Shown piece by piece: positions 31,912 through 48,868 of a DNA stretch of 64,000 bases. The notes under the pieces are model-generated. The model ran no database searches. It saw nothing but the letters and a program-made list of their open reading frames with translations, and was not told where the DNA came from. Location: IMG/VR virus record IMGVR_UViG_3300037010_001702, positions 124,001 through 188,000 of that record; one strand, 5' to 3'. Position numbers and translations under genes: made by a program. Each line of letters starts with the position of its first letter. The stretch's first letter is position 1.

Positions 31912-33816
31912 ATGCCCCAGACATTACCTTGCGAAAATGGCGCTGGAAGTATTAACAATCCAGATGGTTCTCGCGCACAGACGGGATTAAACACCTCCGC
32001 GCTAGCAACATACGCAGCTCCTACTTTAGACTCTGGCACCTGGCAGATTTCTGGTTTAACCCAAGACGTCTGTGCTGCTAATGATCAGACACGCCAGGAG
32101 ACATACGTAGCTGAACAGCTCAACATCTCTGGAGCTCCAATCAATCTCTTCAAGATGCTTGGTGTCCACGAGCAGGGTAATGGTTCAGTTCTCAGTCAAG
32201 GAAGCTTGTTCTCGTCAACGTCCTACCCTGGCTATCCTCTGTCAGGTATTAATTCGGGTTCCTCATCTTGGAAATCATCTCAGGTGGGAAGTGCTATCGC
32301 CGGCTTTGCCTACATTGGTATTGACTTTGGCGTAAAGACAGTTTACAGTGGTGAGTCAGAATATGACCCACAAAAGTCAAAGTGGACCAGCATTGGTTCA
32401 ATTAGCATCACACAGGCAAATACTCCTAATGAGTATGCTCGCCAAGTAAAGGTTGAAATTTCAGATGGTTCATGTGAGGCAACTTCTCCTATCTTTACTG
32501 GAACTGGTGATGGCACGATAGCTATTACCGTCCTTGGTCCTAACGTAAGTCAGGGAATGGTCAGAGCTATCGCAACCTCTCCTACTTCATTTTCTGTATC
32601 TACCACTCTTGCAAATGGTTCTATCTTGAACCTTGGAGTAGCTACCATAGGTTCACCTTTCCAAACAACCTATGCATCATTTACAATCAATCAAGGCGTT
32701 ACTAGCTTCGCTTCTGGCGATATGTTTAGCTTCCAGATCAACTACGTTTGGAAGCGCCTTGGTATGTACAACCTTATTCAATCACCGCTTCCACAGACGT
32801 TGAACTTCAAGCACGTAGTGACGACAAGAGCTGTTAGAGTTACGCCTACAATGTTTACTGGTAGCGGTAGCTGGGAAGTTATTTCCTTTGACATTACCGA
32901 CACTGTTCCGACGGACATCAACAACATTCAAGACCTGTTCTTCAATGAGAACCGCGATCGTGACTACGCTCTCGAACCAACCTTCATGAAGGCGATGTAC
33001 TCTCCTGCTGACTCAATGTCTGACTTGAGCCGCTTTGGTTTGTCCATCCTTGACTCATACTCATTCACGGTCTCCTTTGCTACAATGGTCTCATTGATAG
33101 GTAGACCTATCGTTGTCGGTGACATTGTTGAGGTTATTCCTGAGCTTCAGTACGACCAAAATCTTCGTCCAGTTAGAAAGTTCCTTGAAGTTACAGACAC
33201 TGGTTGGGCATCAGAAGGATTCAGCACGTCGTGGAGACCAACTGTCTATCGCTTTTCTGCTGCTCAAGCTCTCCCATCTCAAGAGACACGCGACATCTTT
33301 GGAACAATTGATACTCAGAAGTACCTTGTTGCTGATTCCATTCTTTCAGATGGAATTGGTGAGCAGATAGATGACACACCGCTCACACAAACAGAAGAGA
33401 TTATTACTGCCGCTGCTAACAAGGTTCCAGAAACTGGTTCCGCAGATGGTAGAGAGCTTGATGCTGTCAAGCTTCACCCTATCATGCCACCATCAAATGC
33501 AAAAGGTCAGCCACCTGCTGCTGGTTCAAGCGCTAAGCCTAATCTCTACATCGAAGATGGCCTTCCAAAAGATGGTCAACCATTCACCGAGGGATACAAG
33601 CTGCCAGACGTTACAACGGCAACCGATGGTGAGTACTACCGTCTTAACTATCCAGCGCATCTTAAGCTACCACCACGCCTTTACCGCTTCTCAATGGTAA
33701 AGAACCGCTGGTTGTACCTTGAGACTGATCGTCGTGGTGACTACAGCTCGCATAAGCCATCTGTACGAAACATTCTTCAGTCACCTACTAACCAAGCTCT
33801 TAGCACTAAAGTATGA
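31912..33816 (+). CDS. gp14: Neck/head closure protein gp14-like with inserted domains
   Basis: IQDLFFNENRDRDY, DLSRFG, GRPIVVGDIVE, GWASEGFS..W.P. Confidence 0.75.
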   Translation: MPQTLPCENGAGSINNPDGSRAQTGLNTSALATYAAPTLDSGTWQISGLTQDVCAANDQTRQETYVAEQLNISGAPINLFKMLGVHEQGNGSVLSQGSLFSSTSYPGYPLSGINSGSSSWKSSQVGSAIAGFAYIGIDFGVKTVYSGESEYDPQKSKWTSIGSISITQANTPNEYARQVKVEISDGSCEATSPIFTGTGDGTIAITVLGPNVSQGMVRAIATSPTSFSVSTTLANGSILNLGVATIGSPFQTTYASFTINQGVTSFASGDMFSFQINYVWKRLGMYNLIQSPLPQTLNFKHVVTTRAVRVTPTMFTGSGSWEVISFDITDTVPTDINNIQDLFFNENRDRDYALEPTFMKAMYSPADSMSDLSRFGLSILDSYSFTVSFATMVSLIGRPIVVGDIVEVIPELQYDQNLRPVRKFLEVTDTGWASEGFSTSWRPTVYRFSAAQALPSQETRDIFGTIDTQKYLVADSILSDGIGEQIDDTPLTQTEEIITAAANKVPETGSADGRELDAVKLHPIMPPSNAKGQPPAAGSSAKPNLYIEDGLPKDGQPFTEGYKLPDVTTATDGEYYRLNYPAHLKLPPRLYRFSMVKNRWLYLETDRRGDYSSHKPSVRNILQSPTNQALSTKV

Positions 33817-34223
33817 TAATCTTTAAAAATTTCCTAAACGAAGCCACGAAGGTAGTTGAACCTTCGTGGGTAGATGACTATGCGTTAGGTTATGCTCATC
33901 TAAGGGACATTCAGCGATGCCTGTCTGAAAAGAACATTATGCAACAGCTCTTCGTGCCAAAGCACCGTGATCCAAAGCTGATGAAGAAAAGAGCTGATGG
34001 CACACTGTGGCGAGATATAAAGCTCGAGATTCCTGATGAGCTTAAAGAAGCTTCTATTCCAGTTTCAACGAGCTTCAGAGAAACTCCACCAGGTGATAGC
34101 AAACCAGCTCACGCATTCTGGACCTCTACAGCCATCAAACTGAAGGATGGAACGTACACTTGTGATACTACAAACCTTACGGAACAAGATAAAACAAACT
34201 TTAAACGAGCATACGGAATATGA
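33813..34223 (+). CDS. Capsid-targeting-signal protein, possibly internally deleted
   Basis: N-terminus MIIFKNFLNEA; KPAHAFWTST motif followed by an abrupt end. Confidence 0.5.
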   Translation: MIIFKNFLNEATKVVEPSWVDDYALGYAHLRDIQRCLSEKNIMQQLFVPKHRDPKLMKKRADGTLWRDIKLEIPDELKEASIPVSTSFRETPPGDSKPAHAFWTSTAIKLKDGTYTCDTTNLTEQDKTNFKRAYGI

Positions 34224-34966
34224 TCACCAGCTACTTTTACGAAGGTCAACTTCGTTCCTACCTCCTTCAGTTCTGCAACATCTTCGCAGGTCTTACTGTA
34301 AAGACAGGTAAGGGCGAGTGTGCTGAAGAAGAGTTCATTTCCGTTCCTATTGCCATTGGAAGCAGGGATAGGGTAGTTGCGGCTATTCAGGCTGGTAACA
34401 CGCAGAACAAACCATTCACGGTGCCGTCAATGGTTGCTAATATGGCTGGTCTTGAAATCTCATCGCAGCGCAAGGGTATCGGCGTAGTCGATCGTAGAAC
34501 ATTTCTACCTGCTGGTGGTGTCTATCCTGCTGACCTGAAGACTGTTACTCGTGTTATGCCTATCCCATACATCATGACAACAGAGCTTGCTATAATTGCA
34601 TCTAACACGCAGCAAATGCACCAAATTTTGGAGCAGCTTCTTGTTCTGTTTGATCCCATTCTTCAGATCCAAACCTCTGACGCTGCTCTTGACTGGACGA
34701 AGATAGCCTCAGTTGAGCTCACTGGAATCAACAATGAGGAAAACTATCCTCCTGGTGGTGAACGCCGTCTTCTCATGTGGACACTTACCTTTGCGACAAA
34801 CATCTGGCTTTCAGCCCCAGTTGATATGAAGGATGATGTGGTTCGAAAAATTACGCTTAGAATCGGTGACCTGTCAAGCTTCCAGATCAACGAGTACGAT
34901 GACGAGGGTAACCTTGTTCCCTTCACCAACGGTCCAGAGTATGGAACAATCGATATAACAGGTTAA
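34220..34966 (+). CDS. gp15: Tail sheath stabiliser/terminator gp15
   Basis: YFY..QLRSYLLQF.NIF, VPI, MPIPY, QILEQLLVLF.P. Confidence 0.85.
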   Translation: MITSYFYEGQLRSYLLQFCNIFAGLTVKTGKGECAEEEFISVPIAIGSRDRVVAAIQAGNTQNKPFTVPSMVANMAGLEISSQRKGIGVVDRRTFLPAGGVYPADLKTVTRVMPIPYIMTTELAIIASNTQQMHQILEQLLVLFDPILQIQTSDAALDWTKIASVELTGINNEENYPPGGERRLLMWTLTFATNIWLSAPVDMKDDVVRKITLRIGDLSSFQINEYDDEGNLVPFTNGPEYGTIDITG

Positions 34967-35084
34967 AAGAAGCTGTTGTTCTGGCCCCGAAACCTGGAAA
35001 GAACATAAATACATAGTCACAAACGCAAATGCAGCTCAACAACCCAAGATGCATTAAAAGAGATATATTAAGGAGATATTAAAT

Positions 35085-36926
35085 ATGGCAACCCTTGTTT
35101 CCCCAGGCGTGTCAGTTACAGTTATCGATGAATCATTCTTCATCCCAGCAGCGGCATCAACAGTTCCATTGTTCTTCGTTGCAACTGAAAAGAATAAAGT
35201 TCAACCAAATGGTCTTACTATTGCATCGGGTACTACAGAGCACTCGGTTGTTCGTACAGTAACCTCTATTGGTCAGAGCACGCAGCTTTATGGTATTCCA
35301 TCGTTCAGAGCTGATTCTGCCGGTAACCAATTCCATGGCGATGCTCGTAATGAGTACGGGCTTTTTGCTCTTAACCAGTTCCTTGGTTTGGCAAATCGCG
35401 CTTACGTTGTTCGCGCAAACGTCGACTTGACAGATGCTGCAGAAACGTTTATTGCAGTTGGTATCCCGCACGCTGGTCCAACTACTCGTGTGGGTGCTGG
35501 CAATGGTATCATGACTGGCGCTGATGTATCATCCAGCCAAGTTAAGCCTGAAACAATCAACGTGGTGTTCACAAGCCCAACTGGTTACACCGTAACTGGT
35601 TCTGACACTGGCATCATTGGTACTGGTACTGTTAACACCTTATTCACGTCTTCAAAGGTTACGTTCACAATTACTTCTGGTTCAGTTGCCTTTACAGCAG
35701 ATGACTACTTTACCTTCGACATCGTTTATACGCCAAACAGCTTCACCGGAACTGGCAATGGTACGATGACTGGCTTAGTAGCTGACGTTAACGCTACAGT
35801 TGAAACATGGGTTATCACTTTTACCAGTGCAACAACCTTCTCAGTAACAGGTACAGTATCTGGTCCATCTATCATGGGTCAAGTTGGTGTTCCTTATGAC
35901 AACAACTTCATTAACTTCTTGATTAGTGCTGGAACAGTTCCATTTGTTGCCGGAGATGATTTCACCGTTTCACTTGTGATGGTTAACCTTACGGCTCCTC
36001 TTGGTGCTAATGATGCTGCTAAGAGAGTTGCTATCGCTACAGCGCTGGCTGCTGAAATTAACAGCAACCAAGAAGTACGTTCTGAAATTTATGAGTATAA
36101 CTTGATCCTTGCCCCAGGTTACCCAGAAGTTGTTAATGAACTTGTAGCTCTTTCAAACTCCATCAATGATGAAGCGTTTGTTATTGCTGATGTTCCTCTC
36201 AATAAGACTCCTGAACAAGCTGCTACATGGGCACTTACTACAGAACGCGTTACATCATCTAATGCAGCTTACTACTACCTATGGGGCATGGCATCTAATC
36301 TTGATGGTACAAATATTGTTGTTGCTCCATCCGGGATTGCAGTTCGCACCTACGCATACAGCGACAATCAGGCATATGTTTGGTTTGCTCCAGCTGGTGT
36401 CCGCCGTGGTTCAGTTACTGGTGTTACTTCTGTTGGATACGTTTCAGGAACTCTTGGAACAGCTACAACATTCATTGAGACCAACCTTAACCAAGGTCAG
36501 CGTGATAACTTGTACGAGTACTTCAAGAACATCAACCCAATTGTATTCTTCCCAGGAAACGGTTTGATTGTTTGGGGCCAGAAGACTTCCTATGGTGCAG
36601 CTTCCGCTCTTGATCGTGTTAATGTAATGCGCTTGCTTATGTACATCAAGAGAGCTCTTCGCAAGGGTGCTTTCCCATTCGTCTTCGAACCTAACGACAA
36701 GATCACTCGCGACAACCTTAAGTCAGTCGCTGATGGATTCTTGAATGACATCATGGCTAAGCATGGCTTGTATGACTTCGTAACTCTTTGCGACGAATCA
36801 AACAACACTCCAACAGTGATCGACAATAACCAGCTGATTATGGACGTTGCTCTTAAGCCAATGGATGCAGCTGAATTTATCTACATTCCAATCCGCGTTC
36901 TTTCTACTGGCGCTTCAATGCCTTAA
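35085..36926 (+). CDS. gp18: Tail sheath protein gp18
   Basis: LVSPGVSVTVIDES, WFAPAG.RRG, INPI..FPG.G..VWGQKT, ALDRVNV.RL, CDESNNT; CATAAATA at 35004. Confidence 0.96.
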   Translation: MATLVSPGVSVTVIDESFFIPAAASTVPLFFVATEKNKVQPNGLTIASGTTEHSVVRTVTSIGQSTQLYGIPSFRADSAGNQFHGDARNEYGLFALNQFLGLANRAYVVRANVDLTDAAETFIAVGIPHAGPTTRVGAGNGIMTGADVSSSQVKPETINVVFTSPTGYTVTGSDTGIIGTGTVNTLFTSSKVTFTITSGSVAFTADDYFTFDIVYTPNSFTGTGNGTMTGLVADVNATVETWVITFTSATTFSVTGTVSGPSIMGQVGVPYDNNFINFLISAGTVPFVAGDDFTVSLVMVNLTAPLGANDAAKRVAIATALAAEINSNQEVRSEIYEYNLILAPGYPEVVNELVALSNSINDEAFVIADVPLNKTPEQAATWALTTERVTSSNAAYYYLWGMASNLDGTNIVVAPSGIAVRTYAYSDNQAYVWFAPAGVRRGSVTGVTSVGYVSGTLGTATTFIETNLNQGQRDNLYEYFKNINPIVFFPGNGLIVWGQKTSYGAASALDRVNVMRLLMYIKRALRKGAFPFVFEPNDKITRDNLKSVADGFLNDIMAKHGLYDFVTLCDESNNTPTVIDNNQLIMDVALKPMDAAEFIYIPIRVLSTGASMP

Positions 36927-36931
36927 TAGAG

Positions 36932-36959
36932 GGGGGGAGGACCTTAAGGTCCTCCCCCC
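36932..36959. repeat. Perfect 28-bp palindrome after gp18
   Basis: GGGGGGAGGACCTT/AAGGTCCTCCCCCC; no U-tract. Confidence 0.85.
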
Positions 36960-36966
36960 AAATCCT

Positions 36967-37323
36967 ATGGAAAATCTTATAGCACAACTATTTGCAGCTC
37001 GTGATCTAGCACATATGCTTCATCTTCGCACGCGTTCTTTTGCACAGCATTTAGCTCTAAATGATTTGTATGAAGGCTTGCTTGAGGGTGCTGACACTGT
37101 TGCTGAACTTTACCAAGGCAAGTATGGTATTCTAAATATCCCAGCGACGACTGCACTCGTGTTTCAAACACAAGATGCACAGACATTTATTCGTGAACTA
37201 GCTATATGGGCAGAATCTTCACGCTCAGTATTTAATCCAGCAGACACTAATCTCTTAAATGAATGGGATAATGTTCTTTCTATTATCTACCGTGCAAAAT
37301 ATAAATTAGAAAACTTGACATGA
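36967..37323 (+). CDS. Ferritin/Dps-like four-helix protein (DUF5856-like)
   Basis: AHMLHLRTRSFAQHLALNDLYE..D.VAE.YQG.YG, YKLENL. Confidence 0.75.
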   Translation: MENLIAQLFAARDLAHMLHLRTRSFAQHLALNDLYEGLLEGADTVAELYQGKYGILNIPATTALVFQTQDAQTFIRELAIWAESSRSVFNPADTNLLNEWDNVLSIIYRAKYKLENLT

Positions 37324-38195
37324 GACCAAGCTTTAAAGAATTCCTTAACGAGAGCGCGGCTGTGGTTCCTCTATTCGTGAGTCTGCCCCGTATTAAGAAC
37401 GAGTGCAAGTACTTTCTTAACGAGTCTGGGGATTCCCCACTTTTAAGAGGAATTCGCGGTATAAGCGAAGATCAAGCCACCTTCTCACCAGCCTCAAAGA
37501 ATAGAGCCCCCAAGGATTCTGGTCCAGGATTCAACTTCATGTTCAACATGGGCTATCAACTTGCTTTTGGCTATAAGTCTATTCGCGCAAACTGTCTTTA
37601 CGCGACTGGTTCACAGGCGATGGCGAAGGCTTACGGACCCACCCACTTTATCTTCCCTGCTGGTGATTTTAGCTTCACCTACTCTCCAGAGTACGCTGAC
37701 TCATACGAGGAATCCTCTTCCATGTTCAGTGAAATAGCTAAAGAGCTAGGTGGATCCGTTGACGTGTACCTCGTTCAGTCAATGTTTGAAGATTTTGCTA
37801 AGAAATTTACAGTTGACGAGTTCATCAAGGGCAGTCCCGAAGTTCAAGAATATATCACCGATGTTTTAGAACACAGTGTTTCAGATGAGAAAATGGAAAA
37901 GATTGATCTGAAAACCTTTAGAGCAGAAATAGTTATGGCTACCAAGTCACTCTTTAAGCATAACTATATTGAATCAAGAGACCTTGAACACGCTATCAAT
38001 TTAAAGCACGAGATCGGTTTCTTTGACTTTCCTGGATACTGGGCTATTCCGATGTCTAAAGTGTATGAAATCCTTAAGCAGGATCAAACGGACTATGGAA
38101 CCAGATACTATCATTCATTTGATACACCCGCTGAATTAAAAGGTGATGCTAAGGGGCTCTACGAGTACCTTCTTCGGCTTATAAAGAACGCTTAG
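37320..38195 (+). CDS. Putative capsid-packaged ADP-ribosyltransferase-like protein 1
   Basis: MRPSFKEFLNE; LLRG, R.PKDS, LYATGS..A..YG..FIFP, HEIGF. Confidence 0.55.
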   Translation: MRPSFKEFLNESAAVVPLFVSLPRIKNECKYFLNESGDSPLLRGIRGISEDQATFSPASKNRAPKDSGPGFNFMFNMGYQLAFGYKSIRANCLYATGSQAMAKAYGPTHFIFPAGDFSFTYSPEYADSYEESSSMFSEIAKELGGSVDVYLVQSMFEDFAKKFTVDEFIKGSPEVQEYITDVLEHSVSDEKMEKIDLKTFRAEIVMATKSLFKHNYIESRDLEHAINLKHEIGFFDFPGYWAIPMSKVYEILKQDQTDYGTRYYHSFDTPAELKGDAKGLYEYLLRLIKNA

Positions 38196-38286
38196 CCCCC
38201 GTCAATTTTACCGAGAAATCACGATTAAGTGATAAATAACCTATGAATGAGATTAACTCTTACGACTTATCAAACAAGGAGATACT

Positions 38287-38877
38287 ATGGCAACATTAAG
38301 TCAAATGGGGATTCCGGGTGCCGGCTTTGGCGTGTTGCATCCTAAGCAACAATATAGATGGCAGGTCACCTTCGTGAATCTTGCACGCTTAGTTTCAGGT
38401 GCTTCATCTCGCGAAATTACTCGTCAAGCTGTCAAGATGGACAGACCTAACTTGTCATTTGAAGAAATAAAAATTGAGCGCTATAACAGCACGGCTTACG
38501 TTGCTGGCAAGCACTCATGGGAAGCTATTAACATTACGGTTGAAGACGATATTACTGGTCTTGCAGCTTACGCTGTCCAAGGACAACTTGAAACTCAACA
38601 ACGCTTGATTGGCGCCGACCTTGCAGGCACATGGTTGAATTCAGCAGCTACTGGTTCTGACTACAAGTTTGGTACTATCCTTCAACAGTTGGATGGTAAC
38701 GAAGGTGTTGTTGAAACGTGGAAGCTTGAAGGTTGCTTCTTGCAGAAGGCTAGCTATAGTGGCCTTGACTACGGTTCAAGCGAAGCATTAACAATTGATC
38801 TTACGATTCGTTTTGACCATGCGCGTCAAGAGCTTACCGGTCAAGGATACGGTACAGCATTGGCTGGTAACCTTTAA
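38287..38877 (+). CDS. gp19: Tail tube protein gp19
   Basis: PKQQYRWQV.F, RPNLSFEE, Y.AGKHSWE.I, DYK, ETWKLEGCF, LDY, TIRFD; GATAAATA at 38231. Confidence 0.92.
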   Translation: MATLSQMGIPGAGFGVLHPKQQYRWQVTFVNLARLVSGASSREITRQAVKMDRPNLSFEEIKIERYNSTAYVAGKHSWEAINITVEDDITGLAAYAVQGQLETQQRLIGADLAGTWLNSAATGSDYKFGTILQQLDGNEGVVETWKLEGCFLQKASYSGLDYGSSEALTIDLTIRFDHARQELTGQGYGTALAGNL

Positions 38878-38895
38878 ACTTAGGAGAAACAAATT

Positions 38896-39045: not shown

Positions 39046-39061
39046 TAGGATAGCAACTTTT

Positions 39062-39183: not shown

Positions 39184-40464
39184 ATGTCAGATATCTCAGG
39201 TTTAATTGGTAGCACGGGCGTAGCTCTCGAGTCAGAAGCGTACCGCCAGTTCGGGGCTGCAGTTGAAAATCAGGTTAGTGGTGAGCTTGGAAAAATATTC
39301 ACGACTGCTTCTACTCAAATAGCTGGCCCGAATGACGCTGCATCTGTCATTAAAAATGTTCAGACTGGGGTCTGGGATCCTACTCCATACGCTTCAGCTC
39401 TTACAAACTTTTCTGGTGGCTTTGATCCTAAGAATAAGTTCCTCTTCAAGGTTGAATTTAAATTCCACCCAGAGCCAGCGCAAATGGCTTCATCACTTGG
39501 CTTCAATGTCAATGACATCAGCCGAGACCTTACGTTCGTAGTTAAGTCAATCGATCTGCCAAAGGTAAAGTTTGACTATGAAGAAGTGAATATGTACAAC
39601 TTCAAAACGAAGATTCTTAAGGGCATCGCCCATGAAAACCTTAACTTGGTCTTTTATGATGACGTTGCGAATCATGCTTTAGCTTTCGTTAATGCGTACA
39701 TGATGCTCTTCAGCCCAATCACACGCAACAAACAGCAAGATGATGACAACATGGAAAACCATGGCTTCGCCTTTAATCCAAACTATCAAGGGCTTGACAC
39801 TGGTAATCGCGGTGCTATTGCAAATGGTAATCGTGGTCGAAAGGACATCTTAAAGTCATTGACAATCGACCAGTTTTACGTGAACATGTCAGATAAGACT
39901 GCCTCAAGTCTTCCAAACTTGGTGCGCGTTAACAGCTTCATTTTCACAAATCCGCGTCTAGCAGAGTACAACACTCAAAACCAAGACCATGAAAGTGGTT
40001 CTGAAGCTGCAACAATTTCAGCCTCATTCGACTATGATGCTCTTCACATCACCCTTGGTGGTGATGGTATGGGAGCAACAACGGTGCTGGGCAACACATT
40101 CCCGGGTGGTGACATATTGAATGGCTACAGCGCTACTGAAGCCAACATCATTAGAGGCCAGTCTGGTTCTGCTGCTGGTAACAATCGCAATCCATTTATT
40201 GACATCCTCGCGCGCCAAGGTTCTAGAATGGCTCAGACGACTGTTAGCAATGCTCTTCGCGGAATGTTTGGTGATGTTGCGGGTGGAGCTTTATCAACTA
40301 CAATCTCTTCAGTAAGTGGTACCCTTGGACAAGCAACGGCAAAGACTCTTGCTAATGCAGCAAGTGGTGTATCCCAAGCTATTGCCCGCCCATCTCCTAC
40401 TCTTGTCACTGACAATGCTGGAGTTACAACACCACCTTCACAGGTAATTAGCAGTTCAGAATAA
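39184..40464 (+). CDS. Tail-tube-fold protein (baseplate-tube junction, gp54-like)
   Basis: PKNKFLFKVEF, VKSIDLPK.F..E.VNMYN, L.FYDD, SFDYD. Confidence 0.65.
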   Translation: MSDISGLIGSTGVALESEAYRQFGAAVENQVSGELGKIFTTASTQIAGPNDAASVIKNVQTGVWDPTPYASALTNFSGGFDPKNKFLFKVEFKFHPEPAQMASSLGFNVNDISRDLTFVVKSIDLPKVKFDYEEVNMYNFKTKILKGIAHENLNLVFYDDVANHALAFVNAYMMLFSPITRNKQQDDDNMENHGFAFNPNYQGLDTGNRGAIANGNRGRKDILKSLTIDQFYVNMSDKTASSLPNLVRVNSFIFTNPRLAEYNTQNQDHESGSEAATISASFDYDALHITLGGDGMGATTVLGNTFPGGDILNGYSATEANIIRGQSGSAAGNNRNPFIDILARQGSRMAQTTVSNALRGMFGDVAGGALSTTISSVSGTLGQATAKTLANAASGVSQAIARPSPTLVTDNAGVTTPPSQVISSSE

Positions 40465-40940
40465 TGGCCTTTAGAGCACGATTCATTCCTAAGAATGCTT
40501 CCAAGTACGTTGGAGACATTGAAAAAATATTTGCCCGCTCTTCATGGGAGCTAACAGTAATGAAATTCTTTGACTCATCTTCAGCTGTTATCAGATGGGG
40601 ATCAGAAGAGCAGGTTATACCATACCTTAGCCCCGTAGATAGTAGAGTTCATGAGTACTGGCCTGACTTCTTTGTTGAGTACGTCGATAAGACTGGAGCT
40701 ACTAAGAAGGAAGTCGTAGAGGTAAAACCACGTCATGAATCAGTAGAGCAGTATGCTAAGTCAGAACGATCAAAGGCGGCACTTGAAGTAAATGAAGCAA
40801 AGTGGAAGGCAGCCAATATCTTCTGTGAATCAAGAGGCTGGACGTTCAGGGTAATTACAGAGCACAGCATCTACCACCAAGGCGTTAAGCAGACTAAACC
40901 TCCGAAGGTTCGAAAGAAGAAGGAGCTAGTAAGTGGCTAA
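40464..40940 (+). CDS. gp4: Head completion nuclease gp4
   Basis: F.PKN..KYVGD, RSSWE, WGSEE..IPY.SP.D...H.Y.PDF, VEVKP, N.AKW.AA. Confidence 0.9.
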   Translation: MAFRARFIPKNASKYVGDIEKIFARSSWELTVMKFFDSSSAVIRWGSEEQVIPYLSPVDSRVHEYWPDFFVEYVDKTGATKKEVVEVKPRHESVEQYAKSERSKAALEVNEAKWKAANIFCESRGWTFRVITEHSIYHQGVKQTKPPKVRKKKELVSG

Positions 40941-41418
40941 CGTAACCAGACAGTCAATCGATCCACGGTTCGCTAAATACTCAGGTCATAAGATTCCTAC
41001 ATTCAGGTCATCCTGGGAAACAGCTTACGCTGGAGCTCTTGAAAGATCACCAGCCGTAAAGTCCTGGTCTTCTGAACCATTTAGCATCACGTACTACAAT
41101 CCAATCAAGAAGCGCAACACGCTTTACTGGCCAGACTTTGTAGTTGAGTATGCTAATGGCTTTGTGTTAATAGTGGAGATCAAGCCATTGAAAGAAGCTC
41201 TTGCTGAAAAGGCTAGAACGCTTTACGATAAGGCAATGGTCCTACAGAACACGGCAAAGTGGCAGGCAGCTGCAGCATTTGCTAAGACACAAGGATGGGG
41301 ATTCAGAGTCTATACTGAGAAGGACCTCGCTGGTCTTATTAACAAGAAGCAGACAGCAAGAACGAATCCTGCGAGACCAGGAAATAGAACCATTAGAACT
41401 AGAGGTATGAGAAAATGA
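40933..41418 (+). CDS. Second gp4/TnsA-like nuclease paralogue
   Basis: FRSSWE, WSSEP..I.Y, YWPDF, VEIKP, AKWQAA, F.V.TE. Confidence 0.85.
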   Translation: MANVTRQSIDPRFAKYSGHKIPTFRSSWETAYAGALERSPAVKSWSSEPFSITYYNPIKKRNTLYWPDFVVEYANGFVLIVEIKPLKEALAEKARTLYDKAMVLQNTAKWQAAAAFAKTQGWGFRVYTEKDLAGLINKKQTARTNPARPGNRTIRTRGMRK

Positions 41419-41882
41419 AACCTGTTACATCAATGTCCCACCCACTCGAATCCGTCTTTGGAATGGAAGATGGTACTATTGACATCGCGCAGGAATATAC
41501 GGTAGCTGAACAAGTTCCGCAAGGACAGCTTACTGAAGCTCCAGTAGATCACAAGGATGAGGATGACAAGGTCATTGAAGAACGTCTCGACTTGGTCTAT
41601 GAGACTGCACTCCAAACATTCCACCAACAAACAGCTTATACCGAGATCATTGAACCTCGATATGCAGCCAGAAATGCAGAAGTTGCTGCCAATTACTTAA
41701 ATATAGCTTTAGCAGCAGTGAACAGCCGCGCTAAGGTAAAGTCAGATCGTAAGAGAGCAAACCAAGTGTTCGCACCTTATTCACCAGGTGGAGGTAAGAC
41801 AACCAACAACTTGGTGATTGCCTCCAGGGAAGAAGTATTACGTATGATCAATATTGATGGAATTAGTAAAGAGGTAAAATGA
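41415..41882 (+). CDS. gp16: Putative terminase small subunit (gp16-like)
   Basis: EPRYAARNAEVA..YL.IAL and TTNNLVIASREE patterns. Confidence 0.55.
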   Translation: MKPVTSMSHPLESVFGMEDGTIDIAQEYTVAEQVPQGQLTEAPVDHKDEDDKVIEERLDLVYETALQTFHQQTAYTEIIEPRYAARNAEVAANYLNIALAAVNSRAKVKSDRKRANQVFAPYSPGGGKTTNNLVIASREEVLRMINIDGISKEVK

Positions 41883-42820
41883 TTTCGTTCAAGCAATTCC
41901 TGTCTGAGACAGCCATAAAGAAGTGGGATGTCGAACACATTGGCCTCGAGGGTCTGGTAACGCTTCTTAATGCCCAGTTTAAGTCTGGACTTGAGTCCAT
42001 TAAGAATGGTAGCATCTTGTTTCGTGGGCTGTCTGGTGGAAAGAACGAAGCAGATGGTTATAAAATAATCGACACTACTAAAGCGCACCGAACATCTAGA
42101 GATACAAACAATATTTACCAGCTGCTAATGGATAATTCAGCGGGCTTTAAGGATTATCCAAAGAGAAAGAATTCACTTATCTGTTCAACTGGATTAACAA
42201 CAGCTGAAAACTATGGCACTGTAAATGTTTTGATTCCGATAGATGGAACAAAAATAGCAGCACTTAAACATCCTGATATTTTTTCACAATCATTGCACAC
42301 CCCACTTGTCCAATCAGGAATTGGGGTGCAGGAGGTGAGTAATGAAATTGAAATGTTTCTGAGAGAACTAGGACTGCGTGGCAATAAGGTATTTGATGAT
42401 ATGCAGGTGCTTGATGATTTTTTAACTAATGTTGCCCCGGACAAAATTATAAAAGCTATAAGTGACAGTGAAACTGGTAATTGCTTTAACTACACTGAAT
42501 GCCTTAAGCTCTTCTCACGCTGTCTTGATGATAAAAAGATGACAACTCTCGCCAATGCGTTGTTCTCTCCTACCTCAATGGACATTAGACTGCTTACAGC
42601 GGGTGATGACATTCCACCTCACAATCAATTGGGGGTTGAAGCATGGTTCTCGGGCGTGGCAGTATCAATGCCACTGGCCACCTTTGCTGATATGCTTTAT
42701 GATTTGAAGAAGAGCGGATTCCCAGTGCATAAATCATTCGACAAGTATATGAAGTTGGAACTTAAGAAGGCTGCAGAACGCTATGATGCACAGCTACGCA
42801 GGGACCAGTCAAATGAGTAA
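41879..42820 (+). CDS. Putative capsid-packaged ADP-ribosyltransferase-like protein 2
   Basis: MISFKQFLSE; LFRG, R.SRDT, SLICST...A..YG...LIP, VEAWFSG. Confidence 0.55.
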   Translation: MISFKQFLSETAIKKWDVEHIGLEGLVTLLNAQFKSGLESIKNGSILFRGLSGGKNEADGYKIIDTTKAHRTSRDTNNIYQLLMDNSAGFKDYPKRKNSLICSTGLTTAENYGTVNVLIPIDGTKIAALKHPDIFSQSLHTPLVQSGIGVQEVSNEIEMFLRELGLRGNKVFDDMQVLDDFLTNVAPDKIIKAISDSETGNCFNYTECLKLFSRCLDDKKMTTLANALFSPTSMDIRLLTAGDDIPPHNQLGVEAWFSGVAVSMPLATFADMLYDLKKSGFPVHKSFDKYMKLELKKAAERYDAQLRRDQSNE

Positions 42821-43385
42821 TATTTCCTTTAAAGAATTCCTCGCTGATGCTGTCCTTAAGAAGCGGGACCAGCAAAACTTAAGCCTTAAGCTTGTTGAGT
42901 TTGGTAAGAAGCTTCCTCTTGATCGAGAGGTTTGGTTCTCAAGCAAAGCTATTTTGACTAAGGACGACAAGTTTGATAGTATTGACGACGCGACCAAACA
43001 GCAGAAGAAAATCAAGATCGAGGAAGAAGTTAATGACAAGATTTTCTACACTGACTTCAAGAAAGAAAAGGAAATCCTCGATGGTAAGTACAAGCTAGTT
43101 GCTACTTGTGGTTGGGTAAAGATGAATGCTAAGCCAGCACACAAGAGCGAACAGTTTAGAATAGTAGCTAAAACAGCAGGCGGCACTGAGTGTGGCTGGG
43201 TAAATTTCGAGAAGCATGGTGATCATCTAGAGGCTCTTGATCTTTCTGTGCAACCAGCTCACAGACGTAAAGGCATTGCTACTGAAATGTATAAGCTCGC
43301 ACGAGAGTGCGGCAATGACGTAGCACCTTCTAAACTTCAAACAGGAATGGGTAAGACATTCTGGAATAAGGATCATTCAAAATGA
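42813..43385 (+). CDS. GNAT acetyltransferase with capsid-targeting-like N-terminus (chimeric)
   Basis: MSNISFKEFLAD; acetyl-CoA-binding motif V.PAHRRKGIATEMY; QT.MGK.FW. Confidence 0.75.
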   Translation: MSNISFKEFLADAVLKKRDQQNLSLKLVEFGKKLPLDREVWFSSKAILTKDDKFDSIDDATKQQKKIKIEEEVNDKIFYTDFKKEKEILDGKYKLVATCGWVKMNAKPAHKSEQFRIVAKTAGGTECGWVNFEKHGDHLEALDLSVQPAHRRKGIATEMYKLARECGNDVAPSKLQTGMGKTFWNKDHSK

Positions 43386-44056
43386 GATTAAAAATGAGAT
43401 TCAAAGAATTCATAACAGAGTGGTCAAACACAGCCAGTGGTATCAGAAAATCCTTAGAAAAGAAGGGCTATAAGTATATTGGCAAAGGTGTTGATCAATC
43501 TGCATATCTTGAACCAAAGACTGGTAGGGTGCTGAAAGTATTTGGCACTGGTCATGGTGGCGATGATGCTGGATTTTCTAAAGATCAATACATGTTTAAA
43601 GCCTGGGCTGCTTATTGTAAAAAGAATAGCACTAATGAATTTCTTCCAAAATTTGATGGTTGGGAATCATTTAAGTGGAAAGAAGAAATGTATCTTCAGA
43701 TCAGAATGGAAAAATTACAGAAGCTTCCAGACGATCTTGCTAACGCTCTTGAAAATATCTCAGAAGAGATTGATCGATCACATAATAAAGCAAAGACAAT
43801 CAATGACATTGTAATGCACGTGCACGAGCTAGACAATGAGGATGAATCCCCCATTCATCTTTTAAGATCACAAGCGGAAGCAATTGAAGAATTAATGGTT
43901 CTTCTAGGAGAAAAGGATTTTAGACTTCTTCTAACAACTATTGGTGATCTATCTAGAATAGCTTATGACGATGGTTATAGGTTTGATCTTCATGGCGGCA
44001 ATTTCATGCATCGTAATGACGGTATTCCCGTCATCGTTGATCCTTGGGTAATATAA
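43382..44056 (+). CDS. Protein-kinase-like enzyme
   Basis: MRFKEFITE; IGKGV Gly-loop, VLKV, DLHGGNFM, IVDP. Confidence 0.75.
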   Translation: MRLKMRFKEFITEWSNTASGIRKSLEKKGYKYIGKGVDQSAYLEPKTGRVLKVFGTGHGGDDAGFSKDQYMFKAWAAYCKKNSTNEFLPKFDGWESFKWKEEMYLQIRMEKLQKLPDDLANALENISEEIDRSHNKAKTINDIVMHVHELDNEDESPIHLLRSQAEAIEELMVLLGEKDFRLLLTTIGDLSRIAYDDGYRFDLHGGNFMHRNDGIPVIVDPWVI

Positions 44057-44059
44057 ATA
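44052..44059 (+). promoter_or_regulatory. T4 late promoter TATAAATA
   Basis: Exact consensus upstream of the zeta-like kinase. Confidence 0.6.
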
Positions 44060-44134
44060 TCTTTACACTTAGCATTCTCTATGATAGAGAAATACCATCT
44101 ACTATATTTGTTCTGAAGTAACACAAGGACTACC

Positions 44135-44869
44135 GTGCAGTTATCTTTCAAAAATTATTTATTAGAATCTAGTTCGGACAAGGGCATCCTAAAGGCTATC
44201 TTTGTTATTGGAATACCTGGATCTGGTAAGTCTTACACTACTGCACAACTAAATGGGGTGGTATCCCCAAAGATTGTGAATACTGACAAAGCTTCAGAGT
44301 TTATGTCTGCAAAAATTGATAAGAAAATTAATTCTGAAACATGGGATGATTTTAAAGACTCTGCACACCGCATAACAAAGACTATGTTAATGAATTATCT
44401 GGACGGGGTATTACCACTATTCATCGATGGTACATCTAGTAATTTGAAAAATATCCATAGACGTATTGGCATTTTAAAATCGGTGGGCTATGATATCGGC
44501 ATTATTAATGTGACTACATCACTAGAAACGGCAAAGAAGCGAGCAAAGGAACGAGAAGAAAAAATTGGTAGAGCTGTTGATGTGTCATTTATCGAAGCTA
44601 ATTTTAAGAAGAGCGCTGAAAATGCAGCCGAATTAAAAAGTCAAGTTTCATTCTTTAGAGAAATCAATAATGATTCTGGCGTACTAGATGATGCTGCTAT
44701 GAAAAAATTATTCAATGAAGTGCAAGACTTCTATTCTAAGAAAGTATCTAACCTTACTGGCCGTAGGGTTCTAGAAGAAATGAATAGCAAGAAGACCAAG
44801 TATCTTGCTCCAGAAATAATGTCAAGAAAAGAGTTAGAACTTCTTTGCAATGGATGGTACCGAGAATGA
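44135..44869 (+). CDS. Zeta-toxin-like P-loop kinase
   Basis: MQLSFKNYLLE; GIPGSGKS, VNTD, IDGT, GY, TSLETAKKR..R. Confidence 0.75.
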   Translation: MQLSFKNYLLESSSDKGILKAIFVIGIPGSGKSYTTAQLNGVVSPKIVNTDKASEFMSAKIDKKINSETWDDFKDSAHRITKTMLMNYLDGVLPLFIDGTSSNLKNIHRRIGILKSVGYDIGIINVTTSLETAKKRAKEREEKIGRAVDVSFIEANFKKSAENAAELKSQVSFFREINNDSGVLDDAAMKKLFNEVQDFYSKKVSNLTGRRVLEEMNSKKTKYLAPEIMSRKELELLCNGWYRE

Positions 44870-45510
44870 TCTCTTTTAAACAATTCTTAAGCGAAGCATC
44901 TGAGTTTGACTTAGAAAAATTCAAGAAAGAGTGTTCTGTATATCTTGCCATGCTAAAGGGTACGCATGGCCGACAGATGCTATATCGCGGCACCCACAAT
45001 ATACCGAAAGACTATCAAGTAGAAACTTGGAAAGAACGTGAAGGACCCAGAGATTCTTCATTCACTATGCATGACGGTATTAACAAATACTTCGAAGACA
45101 AGTTTGGCGTAAAGGCTAGAGACTGGATGTTCTGCTCAGGTAGTCCTAATGATGCAGCAATCTACAGTGCAAGTCGTAAAGACCTTACTATCATTTTTCC
45201 AATAGGCAATTTTGAATGGCTTTGTGCAACTGACGATGATGCTCATGATATGACTGGTTTCTACAACCGGTGCGGTGGTCGTAATGATCCAACATATGAC
45301 AATCCTGAAATTGAAAAGAGTAATAAGCTTGCTGTAGAAATTATGAAAGATAAGATGGAAAAATGGCATTGGAAAGATAGTGAGGACATTGTTGGATGCA
45401 TAAAGTCTAATAACGAAATAATGTTCAGATGTGGTAAGTTTTATGCTTTCAATCATAATGGACCTACTGCAGAAAGCCCTGAGTTTCAAGACTTCTTTCT
45501 ATCAATCTGA
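44866..45510 (+). CDS. Putative capsid-packaged ADP-ribosyltransferase-like protein 3
   Basis: MISFKQFLSE; LYRG, R.GPRDS, MFCSGS...A..Y...IFP, NEIMF. Confidence 0.55.
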   Translation: MISFKQFLSEASEFDLEKFKKECSVYLAMLKGTHGRQMLYRGTHNIPKDYQVETWKEREGPRDSSFTMHDGINKYFEDKFGVKARDWMFCSGSPNDAAIYSASRKDLTIIFPIGNFEWLCATDDDAHDMTGFYNRCGGRNDPTYDNPEIEKSNKLAVEIMKDKMEKWHWKDSEDIVGCIKSNNEIMFRCGKFYAFNHNGPTAESPEFQDFFLSI

Positions 45511-45565
45511 TCTAACCTACTTCTTCTGGACATTCGATAAATAAGCTATCATATTGGAGACACTA

Positions 45566-47722
45566 ATGAAACTTACACAGCAACTTCTTTCTATTTCAGA
45601 AGAATCAGCAGTAGCAAAGTCAGCTCAGCTGCAAGCAGACTTACTAAAGGCTCACCAGAAAGCTAAGAAGGTCAGTGCAGATCAAGGCGTAGTTCAATAC
45701 ATCAATAAGGATAAGAACACAGGTCGCATTTATGCATCTGATTGGTATGATGACGATGAAACTATTGCATCATACAACAATGGTAAGCTAAAAGGTGCAG
45801 TCAAAGAAGAAATCGTTCCTTTATCAAAATTAAAACCAGGAATGAAGATTCGTTGGGTAGAAGACGGTGACGAAAAAATAGGCACTATTATTGCTGATCC
45901 AAAATATAATGGTGGGATGAGAATCGGGGGTCGTTCTGTTAAAAATATTTTCGATCAAGGTTCTACAACAGAATTAACAATCATAAAAGAAGCTTCCGAA
46001 CTGAATGATGCCACCATTAATTACATGGAAGATAAGAAGAAAGAGGGTGCTAATAAGAATGCTGATCTAATGGAGGAAGATGATGAAGATTATGAAGATG
46101 ATGAAGATTATGAAGATGATGAAGATGATGAAGACCCAAATACTTTCTATGTAGCATTCTGTTATGAAGATGAGCACCGCTCATGGATTGGTAAAGTCAC
46201 TAAGACAAATGGTGGTAAGTGGCGTGAAGAGAAGTATCAAGGTAAGCCCGACTATCATTGGGGCACTTCATACATGAGCTACTTGAAGCCACAAGACGTT
46301 ATGAACTGGATTCATAAAGACTATAGCTCTCGTCGTGGTTTGGAAATTGAAGGTCCATTCTTTACTCCAGCAGAAGCTATTGAGTATGCAGAACACAATG
46401 GGGGTTCTATTAAAGAATCAGTTGGGATGACGGAAGCCCAAGCTTATACTGACTTTGAAGATTGGAAGCAAGCAGTTTTGAATTCATATCCACGACAAGC
46501 TAAGAAGATTAAATTCAAGGGTCGCATGGAAGGTGGTAAGGATACTATCTCTGCTGAAGTTCCAGGAGAAGACCGTTGCTATGGCGTGTGGAGTCAAGAC
46601 AAAGAGAAGGGTGTTGTTCTTTCTGAAGCTGCAAAGGACATGATTGAAGCTTATGGAATTCGTGGTATGAAGCGTACTCCGTGGCGGCGTACCTTCAAGA
46701 ATGAGGATGCTCTCATCAAGTGGGCCGAGAAGAATGATGCTGAAGTATATGGCCAGCGTGAAACTGATTATGCTATCGAGCTCAACAAGAACAGCAAGCA
46801 TAAGGGTGAGAAGGTTTCAGAAGCGTTTAAGGGTAGCTTTAACGACGACGATTGGTATGAAGTAAATCCAAAAACAAATGAGGTTGTTAAGTACGCTGGT
46901 GGTAAGGATAGCTACAAAACTGTTTATGGCGGTGAGCACAAGCTTGGCAATGGAAATGTTGTAATGCGTGGTATGAAGGCTAAGCACCTTAAGCCAATTG
47001 AAGAAGCATTAGACCTTTCTAACTTCTCACCCGAGATTCAGTGGCGCAAGAATAAGATTGCTGTGCTTGAAAAGCAGATTGAGAAGAAACCATCCGTCGC
47101 AAAGCAGATTAAAGATCCGAAAAGACAAATAAAGGAAAAGGAACTTGCAATGACATTTAACGAAGCTAAGGTGCCACGCAAGGGTTCCATTGCCTATAAT
47201 GCAATGATGAAACGCAAGGAAGAAGAGAATAAGCCAGAGAATATCAAGAATACTGAAAAGATTGGTAACACGAACCATATGGTCGGGACAGCTAAGGTAG
47301 TGCATGACGAAGCTAATGAAGGTATATCTCCTTACAAGCCAAATGCGCGAGTAAAGATCATCTCTGGGCCTAAGGACTGCATTGGTAAGGAAGGAACGAT
47401 TGGCGAGGTAGTTACTACCAATGGTCAAAAATCCTACACCGTTGACTACGATCATGACTACAAGTCAAGCAAACCTAACTTCGGTGCTAAGTCAGTGAGA
47501 CTTCAACCAAGGGACATCAAGCTTATTCGTGGGCCAGTAAAGGAAGCAAAAGATACTCAGCTTGAGGTTATTAACAGATCTCACATAGAGCATGGCCTTC
47601 CTAAGAAAGTTCTCTTCACTGGCAACAAGGAAGAGTGCTATGAATTCATGCGTAAGCACAAGTCTCTTCTCATGGATCTTATGGATAAAGCTACGGGAAA
47701 GTTGGTGTCCTATGTCCTATAA
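45566..47722 (+). CDS. Large modular putative internal head protein
   Basis: GATAAATA and GGAG upstream; MKLTQQLLSISEE; many (V/I/L)xE-A/S sites; KOW/SH3-like modules. Confidence 0.6.
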   Translation: MKLTQQLLSISEESAVAKSAQLQADLLKAHQKAKKVSADQGVVQYINKDKNTGRIYASDWYDDDETIASYNNGKLKGAVKEEIVPLSKLKPGMKIRWVEDGDEKIGTIIADPKYNGGMRIGGRSVKNIFDQGSTTELTIIKEASELNDATINYMEDKKKEGANKNADLMEEDDEDYEDDEDYEDDEDDEDPNTFYVAFCYEDEHRSWIGKVTKTNGGKWREEKYQGKPDYHWGTSYMSYLKPQDVMNWIHKDYSSRRGLEIEGPFFTPAEAIEYAEHNGGSIKESVGMTEAQAYTDFEDWKQAVLNSYPRQAKKIKFKGRMEGGKDTISAEVPGEDRCYGVWSQDKEKGVVLSEAAKDMIEAYGIRGMKRTPWRRTFKNEDALIKWAEKNDAEVYGQRETDYAIELNKNSKHKGEKVSEAFKGSFNDDDWYEVNPKTNEVVKYAGGKDSYKTVYGGEHKLGNGNVVMRGMKAKHLKPIEEALDLSNFSPEIQWRKNKIAVLEKQIEKKPSVAKQIKDPKRQIKEKELAMTFNEAKVPRKGSIAYNAMMKRKEEENKPENIKNTEKIGNTNHMVGTAKVVHDEANEGISPYKPNARVKIISGPKDCIGKEGTIGEVVTTNGQKSYTVDYDHDYKSSKPNFGAKSVRLQPRDIKLIRGPVKEAKDTQLEVINRSHIEHGLPKKVLFTGNKEECYEFMRKHKSLLMDLMDKATGKLVSYVL
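46075..46135 (+). repeat. 18-bp tandem repeat encoding an EDDEDY acidic tract
   Basis: GAAGATGATGAAGATTAT repeated. Confidence 0.8.
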
Positions 47723-48014
47723 GCCATCATTTCGCCAGTTTATTGAAGAACAGACTCTTCAAGCGACCATTAATAATGTTGCGATGCAGATGGTCGGAGG
47801 ACCGATTCAAAAGATTGACTCCATCAAGGAAAGAGATATTGAAACAGCAAGAGAACTTCTGCACCGCTTTGTAAAGGCAGCAGATGGTTCTTGGATAATC
47901 AATGTGTTCAAAGCGACATGGGGTAAGTTCATTCGAATTGACCCACCTAAGGGTTCTCCTGCACCACAGGAGTTCTATGTTCCAGTTAATAAAGAGGAAG
48001 AATATGCTACTTAA
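47712..48014 (+). CDS. Hypothetical protein with capsid-targeting-like N-terminus
   Basis: MSYKPSFRQFIEE. Confidence 0.6.
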   Translation: MSYKPSFRQFIEEQTLQATINNVAMQMVGGPIQKIDSIKERDIETARELLHRFVKAADGSWIINVFKATWGKFIRIDPPKGSPAPQEFYVPVNKEEEYAT

Positions 48015-48507
48015 ACAACTAATGGAAGTTAAGACCATCAAAGAAGGTCAGATGAAGAATGCAATTATGGATACGGTTGAAGACCAGTGCCGCAATGCAG
48101 ATATTCCAAAGGGCGCATCATATGATCAAGCAGTTGCTGCTATCGTAAAGAGCATTCGCAAAACAGACACCATAGCTGCTGAGTGCTCAGTATCAGAACT
48201 AACTGGCTATGTAAAGGAATACTTTACTGAGGACGAGTATGTTGCAGAATCTGCAGACCTTGCTAAGCAACTTGTTTGTGGCGAAGACGCGTCAATGAAT
48301 CCTAACTTTGCTTCTACTCAAGGTGAGCAACCTTCCGACGTAGCTCAAGCACCAGCTCAAGCACCACTTCCACCAGAACAAATTGGTAAGGCTGGTGATT
48401 ACCTCGTCATGCTTGATCAAAAGTCTGAAATTGTTACGATCACGAAAGGCGGACAGGTTATTACCAGCATGCCACTTGTTATTTGGACTCAACTTAAGAG
48501 AAGCTAA
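48004..48507 (+). CDS. Hypothetical head-associated protein
   Basis: GAGG RBS; MLLKQLMEVKTIKEG. Confidence 0.6.
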   Translation: MLLKQLMEVKTIKEGQMKNAIMDTVEDQCRNADIPKGASYDQAVAAIVKSIRKTDTIAAECSVSELTGYVKEYFTEDEYVAESADLAKQLVCGEDASMNPNFASTQGEQPSDVAQAPAQAPLPPEQIGKAGDYLVMLDQKSEIVTITKGGQVITSMPLVIWTQLKRS

Positions 48508-48814
48508 ATATTATCATCCAGAGAATTTCTTGCAGAAGCTGTCATTAGTAAGATGCCGGACTTTGAGGTGGTGAATGTGAAGAAAGCTATTAAAGCTTTC
48601 TTCATAAAAACTACGGAGCGCACCCACGGTGGTGGGTGCTTACAGTCCTGAAAAGACTGGTTTTAAGGTTCTCACCACTAAAACGCTCCATACCGTCTCA
48701 GAAACAACTGAAGTTTGGGTTGGTGGTAAAGTAGTTTTTATCAGACCTGACCTACTGCAAGAAGTAAAGGAAGCTCTTAACGAGCACCGATTGCCTTCCT
48801 GTCACTATAAATAA
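48508..48814 (+). pseudogene. Remnant of an ART-like paralogue
   Basis: ILSSREFLAEAVISK (eroded MLSFREFLAE) plus frameshifted YSPEKTGFKVLT..TEVWVGGKVVFI, resembling the C-terminus of 41879. Confidence 0.6.
48806..48813 (+). promoter_or_regulatory. T4 late promoter TATAAATA
   Basis: Exact consensus upstream of terL. Confidence 0.7.
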
Positions 48815-48868
48815 ATTGCAGGTTATTAAAACGTCTCACGTGTCCCTGCGATATTATAGGAGATAATT

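Follow-up and report, generated by a model that had tools for sequence, protein, structure and literature searches.

T-even phages have internal proteins that form a diverse set with a capsid targeting sequence (CTS) alone in common (review PMC3012670). The T4 CTS has been experimentally defined (Mullaney & Black 1996, as cited in PMC13326640), and its pairing with the gp21 protease was recognised in T-even phages in the 1990s, with a few small proteins as the cargo known from that group. Here we describe a 64,000-nucleotide (nt) stretch of IMG/VR virus record IMGVR_UViG_3300037010_001702, positions 124,001 to 188,000 of that record (the window, to which all coordinates refer), in which eight genes and one relic between 33813 and 48814 begin with a close variant of this peptide, hereafter the tag. 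We give a probability of roughly 0.78 to the reading that the tag is a T4-type CTS on modular, mostly enzyme-like cargo that would be packaged in the head, cleaved and delivered with the DNA. The mechanism, CTS plus gp21 protease, is already known; what is new is the enzyme cargo, the size of the tagged families and the reach into jumbo phages.

Among described systems, the internal proteins IPI-III of T4 bear the clearest likeness to this locus. The decapeptides are nearly the same (MKTYQEFIAE in T4, MISFKQFLSE in the window) and end in a gp21-type L/I-x-E, each tag is accompanied by a T4-type head module with a gp21 homologue, and each is the sole conserved part of otherwise unrelated, variable proteins. 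In contrast, the T4 cargo consists of small basic proteins, of which the one whose role is known acts as an inhibitor (IPI* versus GmrSD), whereas the window cargo is mostly enzyme-like (two kinases and a GNAT) together with a large family that we call A2, and its 8-9 tagged genes are interleaved with tail and packaging genes within 15 kb. The window phage is also a distant jumbo relative of T4, with 27-33% identity in core head proteins.

T4 Alt is an ADP-ribosyltransferase (ART) that the phage carries in its head and injects (established knowledge; see the discussion in PMC7824862). A ready-made host-modifying enzyme in a T4-type head, delivered with the DNA, is what Alt and the window cargo would share; however, the 'ART-like' proteins of the window have no significant similarity to any ART. 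Alt is not known to carry an IP-type CTS. A further likeness is to T7 gp0.7, since the protein encoded at 43394 matches the gp0.7 PHROG and Pfam family, has a kinase fold and retains its catalytic residues. T7 gp0.7 is synthesised early after infection, whereas the window kinase has a head-targeting tag and sits among late genes, so that its delivery as a protein is implied. The ejection proteins and propeptides of phiKZ-like phages and SPN3US, P1 Dar and the polyvalent proteins are likewise packaged in the head, cut by a prohead protease and passed on to the host (PMC5694885, PMC9024508, PMC7824862), but they have other, longer or undefined targeting regions and other cleavage motifs, and no sequence kinship to the tag.

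The window comprises the late/structural region and part of the replication region of a T4-like jumbo (giant) phage. Its tagged open reading frames (ORFs), with protein lengths in amino acids (aa), are as follows.

33813..34223, + strand: tagged ORFan, 136 aa, MIIFKNFLNE followed by A; its start overlaps the stop of the upstream gene for a 634-aa virion protein by 4 nt
37320..38195, + strand: tagged A2 member, 291 aa, MRPSFKEFLNE, between the sheath and tube genes; phrog_11975 2.9e-20, A2 profile 3e-59
41879..42820, + strand: tagged A2 member, 313 aa, MISFKQFLSE; phrog_12810 5.5e-22, A2 profile 9e-48
42813..43385, + strand: tagged, marginally GNAT-like acetyltransferase, 190 aa, MSNISFKEFLAD followed by A; PF00583, PF13508 4e-05
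43394..44056, + strand: tagged protein-kinase-like enzyme of the T7 gp0.7 type, 220 aa, MRFKEFITE; phrog_15752 7.3e-13, PF27024 (Phage_T7_kinase) faint
44135..44869, + strand: tagged zeta-toxin-type P-loop kinase, 244 aa, GTG start, QLSFKNYLLE; PF06414 1.4e-13
44866..45510, + strand: tagged compact A2 member, 214 aa, MISFKQFLSE
47712..48014, + strand: tagged small protein, 100 aa, MSYKPSFRQFIEE; Pfam and PHROG give no assignable function
48508..48814, + strand: relic of a tagged gene, ILSSREFLAE, with ATA for ATG, S for the aromatic F and a frameshift near 48640 (about 45 codons on)

A scan of the six-frame translation of the window with a strict motif, [FY][KR][ENQ][FY][ILV]x[ED], gave 8 matches against 0.15 expected (300 block shuffles: mean 0.15, maximum 2). 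All eight lie at most 6 residues from the start codon of + strand ORFs of 100-313 aa, between 33813 and 47712, while no gene in the replication/recombination parts of the window (1-17 kb and 50-64 kb) has the tag. The nine tagged N-termini reported in the initial annotation are all in place, the copy at 48508 in eroded form. The ATA at the start position, the loss of the aromatic residue and the frameshift make the ninth copy a pseudogene. Since the codons of the tag vary among copies (TTT/TTC, AAA/AAG/CGC, CTA/CTT/CTG/CTC/ATA/TTA/ATT and GAA/GAG), the tag is kept at the protein level and is not a DNA repeat; an origin as a DNA repeat or recombination cassette is rejected on the same ground.

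The resemblance to T4 extends beyond the motif. T4 ipII and ipIII start with MKTYQEFIAE followed by A, and ipI starts with MKTFKEFTS (read from NC_000866). The window consensus, M-x-S-F-K-E/Q-F-L-x-E followed by A/S/T, is the T4 CTS peptide with conservative changes, and seven of the eight intact copies end in [IL]-x-E, the gp21-type cleavage motif; the GNAT copy ends in L-A-D. The head genes that bear on this point, assigned like the rest of the head and tail module by PHROG scans of the window proteins, are these.

20585..22201, + strand: gp20-type portal (phrog_213 2.3e-87), which marks a T4-type head module
22265..22879, + strand: gp21-type prohead maturation protease (phrog_207 1.3e-55), with TATAAATA at 22227
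25255..26493, + strand: major capsid protein (MCP; phrog_138 7.5e-92), aligned to T4 gp23

Compared with T4 gp21, the protease shows 33% identity (E 2e-20), with GELNHP and GVSSRG both retained, and the predicted propeptide boundary of the MCP (HLQE/TAAAG, the slash marking the cut) aligns on the maturation site of T4 gp23 (FLTE/AEIGG). Given that the tag is nearly identical to the T4 CTS, that a gp21-type protease and an L-x-E boundary in the MCP accompany it, and that tagged homologues were detected in purified virions of relatives, we agree with the capsid-targeting interpretation proposed initially and regard it as strongly supported that the tagged ORFs carry a T4-type CTS. A profile comparison (hhalign) of family A2 with T4 IPIII aligned only the 13 residues of the tag, and IPIII was rejected as a member of the family because the alignment is limited to the tag.

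Several observations indicate that the tag is a module independent of what follows it. It stands on unrelated folds: the kinase fold, the P-loop kinase, the GNAT, family A2 and two further proteins of no assigned function. When 19 A2 sequences were aligned, down to 12% identity, the invariant columns were F4, K5, E10, G42 and P112, three of the five within the tag. A profile search gave 8126 family A2 representatives at 50% clustering, and among 139 short representatives from its best matches 99 had the strict motif and 120 a core tag, defined as [FYWLM][ILVM]x[ED] within residues 1-13, against 1-2% for control segments. The core tag was likewise present in 75 of 102 kinase-family homologues (control segments over both families, 1-10%). 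The acidic residue keeps a fixed distance from Met1: of 195 cases across the two families, 185 have it at position 9 or 10. Both AF2 models (44866 and 43394) have low confidence only at residues 1-10 or 1-11, as expected if the tag is flexible. The GNAT has its own tag in the window; in L003, a related metagenomic contig, it has no separate tag and forms one protein with an A2 domain, which carries the single tag. The pattern predicted by these sequences is one tag per independently translated cargo, and the cargo is modular.

The same arrangement recurs in relatives, some of which have published virion proteomes. L003 (338,660 bp) is syntenic with the window and has at least 10 tagged genes at the same places, three of them between sheath and tube and the others between a small-terminase-like gene and the large terminase gene (TerL). 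The tail sheath of the window phage is closest to that of Ralstonia phage RsoM2USA (57% aa), then XacN1, then Rak2/CBB-like phages. In a six-frame scan of the RsoM2USA genome (344 kb) we found about 14 strict matches, 8 of which are the N-termini of annotated genes (ORF61, 81, 89, 254, 255, 385, 403 and 404), and near-variant tags open ORF90, 256, 258, 275, 279 and 357. Its TerL-side cluster is tagged at ORF254 (zeta-like), ORF255, ORF256 and ORF258. ORF89 (MKTFKQFLSE) is among the ten abundant virion bands identified by LC-MS/MS, and so is ORF257, an untagged gene in the TerL-side cluster (PMC8504454). Pfam found nothing usable in nine tagged RsoM2USA proteins and one tagged L003 protein.

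Agrobacterium phage Atu_ph07 provides the larger set. Its gp53-gp63 are eleven tandem genes beginning M[RK]W.QL.E, a variant of the tag that also ends in L-x-E; most of them are homologous to window proteins (blastp 1e-5 to 1e-16), and five are also matched by Foldseek (1e-5 to 1e-10). The homology of gp53-gp65 is to the proteins at 37320, 41879 and 44866, and for gp53 also to the zeta-like protein, since gp53 consists of an A2 family domain fused to a zeta domain, whereas in the window the zeta-like protein is encoded by a separate tagged gene. Every one of gp53-gp65 was detected in purified virions, with 3-31 unique peptides each (Table S5, PMC6102473), so that the virion association of this array in Atu_ph07 is experimental. 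In that paper gp53-gp65 are entered under hypothetical virion proteins, and no targeting signal is mentioned (PMC6102473). Our literature search found no paper linking the CTS to these phages or to enzyme cargo.

The kinase-like protein at 43394 has an AF2 model of pLDDT 90.3, for which Foldseek returned 64 matches in the PDB at E<=1e-3. All 50 of the 50 matches listed are protein-kinase-like (eukaryotic-type kinases and pseudokinases, aminoglycoside phosphotransferase, fructosamine-3-kinase), although their TM-scores are modest (0.3-0.4). Within the family G32 (glycine loop), D34, E106, D198, N203 and D216 are invariant and K48 nearly so, the motif around the catalytic residues being D198-L-H-G-G-N203. 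A T7 gp0.7-like protein kinase fold is thus supported by model and sequence. The assignment of 44135 as a zeta-type P-loop kinase is similarly supported: it scores 51.2 bits against PF06414 (cut-off 22.3), has a Walker A motif, GIPGSGKS, and has tagged homologues in RsoM2USA ORF254 (MTTFKEYLLE), L003 9273 and the zeta domain of Atu_ph07 gp53; its substrate may be UDP-GlcNAc, NAD or a polynucleotide. The candidate GNAT at 42813 scores 23.9 bits against PF00583 (cut-off 20.7), the remaining GNAT models staying below their cut-offs; its RRKGIA fits GNAT motif A (acetyl-CoA, R/Q-x-x-G-x-G/A), and it shares 64% identity with the C-terminal part (residues 230-404) of the fused 404-aa protein that L003 encodes at 7388-8602. 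This makes it a marginal GNAT-like acetyltransferase. The protein at 33813 has no Pfam or PHROG match, no A2 profile match and no homologue except itself; its candidacy as an eroded ART was rejected, as it is an orphan lacking an A2 profile match or homologue.

The proteins at 37320, 41879 and 44866 are paralogues that form one family (phrog_11975, 15932 and 12810), which we have called A2. By blastp, 37320 matches Atu_ph07 gp54-gp63 (1e-9 to 5e-15) as well as RsoM2USA ORF357 and ORF255, and 41879 matches Atu_ph07 gp53, gp54, gp56 and gp58 (1e-11 to 4e-16). All 17 of the 17 homologues of 44866 (37-79% identity) begin M..FK.F[IL].E. The AF2 model of 44866 (pLDDT 87.8, residues 1-11 below 50) has 24 matches in BFVD, all of them uncharacterised phage proteins.

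These three proteins had been described as ART-like. Pfam has no match for the single proteins, and none up to E = 10 for 17 A2 members; searches of PDB sequences, by single sequence and by profile, also gave no match, and in the PDB by Foldseek the best E for the 44866 model is 0.75, at a TM-score of about 0.1. The BFVD matches of that model to ART-PolyVal proteins have E above 3. The leads in favour are weak ones. A pattern of the [RH]-[ST]-E kind, which in ARTs falls on strands beta1, beta2 and beta5, can be traced at plausible points of the secondary structure: L[YF][RH]G is on a strand, and F.[ST]G closes a strand that leads into a helix. In the subfamilies of 44866 and 37320 a strand opens with NEI, whose Glu is unaligned in the 41879 subfamily. 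The best named language-model neighbour is DUF2441 (0.81-0.84, rated by the tool as a lead only), and DUF2441 belongs to the Pfam ART clan (PMC7955679). Because Pfam, PDB sequence searches and PDB Foldseek all lack a significant match, every test at significance level having failed, we have not filed the three proteins as ARTs, and we put the assignment at about even odds.

The remainder of the cargo list in the initial annotation fared better: the zeta-like kinase stands, as does the kinase-like enzyme (gp0.7 PHROG, matches to kinase folds only), and the GNAT is marginal. Its description of the whole as a post-translational-modification toolkit goes further than the evidence, because the substrates of GNATs and zeta-type enzymes are often tRNA or small molecules.

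Two further observations concern A2 relatives. Pfam finds no domains in seven multidomain relatives of 508-2645 aa; in the giant among them (P0019, 2645 aa) five stretches match the family profile, and such proteins may be polyproteins or polyvalent injected proteins. In the 326-aa protein at L003 15788-16768 a complete tag is internal, at about residue 62 (GLTFKEFLDE followed by A), and an A2 domain follows; either the start was miscalled or an N-terminal extension has been fused before a cleavable tag.

The tagged genes lie on the same strand as the structural genes and overlap neighbouring late genes by 4-11 nt. The T4 late-promoter-like sequence TATAAATA occurs at 8 sites in the window, against 2.5 expected; among them are 22227, 24235, 44052 and 48806, those outside the cargo being upstream of the protease, a scaffold gene and TerL. 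One lies within the cargo cluster.

44052..44059, + strand: TATAAATA, 76 nt upstream of the zeta-like gene

The overlaps and the putative promoters together suggest that the tagged and structural genes may be co-expressed late.

In our model, the tag would be a flexible N-terminal peptide of about 10 residues, M-x(1-4)-[FY]-[KR]-x-[FY]-[IL]-x-E, ending at an L/I-x-E site of the gp21 family. The tagged genes would be expressed with the late structural genes among which they sit, and the tag, by analogy with T4 IPI-III, would draw each protein into the prohead's scaffolding core. There the gp21-type protease (22265-22879) would cut behind Glu9 or Glu10, and the mature proteins would remain in the DNA-filled head and subsequently enter the cell with the DNA, where the injected enzymes may act early on the host, in takeover or counter-defence. 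The cargo set would comprise the gp0.7-like kinase, the zeta-type kinase, the GNAT-like protein, the three A2 paralogues and two small proteins. Because a T4-like head-loading tag sits on likely enzymes, we believe that the phage probably injects ready-made enzymes with its DNA. A role in rapid host arrest or counter-defence is plausible, as zeta, GNAT and kinase domains are classic toxin modules; functional analogues include T7 gp0.7 (a kinase of host shut-off), T4 Alt and Rac of phiKMV, a GNAT whose target is RNA polymerase (PMC7824862).

Some observations weigh against this model. In the kinase the Glu is followed by W, in some copies by E or Q, and the GNAT tag has D where the other copies have E. 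The proteins at 33813 and 47712 have no assignable function, and the former has no homologue at all. The published virion proteomes of the relatives lack mapped N-termini, and cleavage and injection in the window phage are carried over from T4 by analogy. The enrichment of TATAAATA is modest, the observed count being reached in 2 of 100 shuffles. An alternative is a tag that does target the prohead core but whose cargo serves inside the head, in scaffolding, DNA condensation or charge balance, or in the producing cell, instead of acting as injected enzymes on the next host. No enzymatic role is known for IPII and IPIII of T4 (established knowledge), 33813 and 47712 have no recognisable fold, and acidic-repeat proteins share the cluster, all of which would suit such a role. 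However, the kinase G-loop, K48, E106, D198-x-H-x-x-N203 and D216 are deeply conserved, as are the zeta-like Walker A and the GNAT motif A, and since conservation of catalytic signatures is unexpected for filler proteins we consider a head-internal role unlikely.

That the tag might direct proteins elsewhere, to the tail lumen or the baseplate for example, or out of the producing cell by export, is suggested by the position of several tagged genes between tail genes (sheath, tube and gp15-like). Yet the peptide has the gp21 cleavage motif at its end, agrees with the head CTS of T4 and lacks the hydrophobic character of a signal peptide, and further tagged genes of RsoM2USA adjoin capsid/neck genes and TerL, so that we hold this to be very improbable. 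Given that the tag is found on at least four unrelated folds, that its codons differ between copies, that its columns are the most conserved in a family whose clusters at 50% identity number more than 8000, and that its register is fixed at position 9 or 10 and matches the experimentally defined T4 CTS, it is barely credible that the shared N-terminus is a leftover of duplication or cassette recombination (a shared 5' exon) with no targeting function, even though three of the tagged genes are paralogous and the genes are clustered.

With delivery by a T4-type CTS as the preferred reading, the tag is seen to label both the enzyme-like cargo of a distant jumbo phage and hundreds of divergent metagenome homologues. 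It would provide a simple sequence rule for predicting phage proteins that are delivered as protein at the moment of infection, the stage that decides host defences and host takeover. It also offers a testable hypothesis, packaging in the head and processing by the protease, for a very large hypothetical family and for a dozen 'hypothetical virion proteins' of published proteomes, and the tag could be used for loading foreign proteins into the heads of non-model phages. More tentatively, and at somewhat less than even chances, the T4 CTS may be a universal label in environmental T4-like and jumbo phages that loads interchangeable toxin-like enzymes (kinases, zeta-type enzymes, GNATs), its commonest cargo being an enzyme family that had gone unrecognised, has over 8000 clusters at 50% identity and may form a new branch of the ART clan. 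If this were true, phage heads would be effector-injection devices with a plug-and-play arsenal, comparable to secretion-system effectors, and scanning for the tag would find new injected effectors from sequence alone.

The cargo cluster also includes an untagged gene.

45554..47722, + strand: acidic-repeat protein, 722 aa, untagged, with the N-terminus METLMKLTQQLLSISE

Pfam and PHROG gave no informative family match for this protein, which is homologous in blocks to a 1453-aa L003 protein at 11009 and may be another head-internal protein. Untagged genes inside these clusters, in the window and in the relatives, have a second type of N-terminus, M-K-L/F-L-x-E/Q-L, with L-x-E included. Examples are, in the window, 45554 and 48004 (MLLKQLMEV); in L003, 11009 (MKFLSEL) and 15372 (MKLLQEL); and in RsoM2USA, ORF88 (MKLHEISE) and ORF405 (MRKLMKLEDL). 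This N-terminus may be a second targeting peptide or propeptide.

The PHROG assignments of the remaining neighbours are as follows.

29263-31164: neck protein
34220-34966: gp15-like sheath stabiliser
35085-36926: sheath
38287-38877: tube
39184-40464: tube-like protein
48869 and 50214 (starts): TerL, split

Scaffold-like genes are also part of the T4-type module, and SSB, UvsX and a helicase are encoded further downstream. A gene like the Dps-type starvation-inducible genes (36847-37323, phrog_858) lies between the sheath gene and the first tagged gene of that interval, and its L003 counterpart matches DUF5856; its real start is probably an internal Met, because the listed TTG start overlaps the end of the sheath gene. 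Two paralogous proteins of the T4 gp4 head-completion type are encoded in tandem at 40464-40940 and 40933-41418, and they match families of TnsA-like endonucleases as well. Scans of the window for Rfam families and tRNAs were negative. A DNA search with window positions 41400-49000 gave no match among GenBank phages, so this phage is not in that collection.

The window also has split genes. TerL is divided into ORFs at 48869-49753 and 50214-51353, with about 460 nt between them. The first ends in FRQEVL/CCSSWASINTSIGKTTLEELYECLLEGQEQVYHINV and a stop codon, about 36 residues beyond the putative junction, and the second opens with a 115-residue intein-like segment ending AYITEGVISHN/CEF, followed by the nuclease part. 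In the GOS-TerL and AceL-TerL split inteins, IntN is 37 or 25 aa and IntC 115 or 104 aa (PMC11766414), and the split TerL looks like a naturally split intein of this type, with a short N-fragment. The gp41-like helicase is a 'fractured gene' (61162-63941): its N part ends in an intein N-fragment (WDECF/CGETPVLMSD...), its C part opens with an intein C-fragment (...NGAVVSN/CHGIKA), and a free-standing HNH-type endonuclease gene (62198-63115) lies between the two. A fragment of a homing endonuclease (31174-31548; phrog_314, positions 170-306 of 574) is found between the neck and virion protein genes, and together with the split TerL and helicase it suggests heavy mobile-element traffic in this genome.

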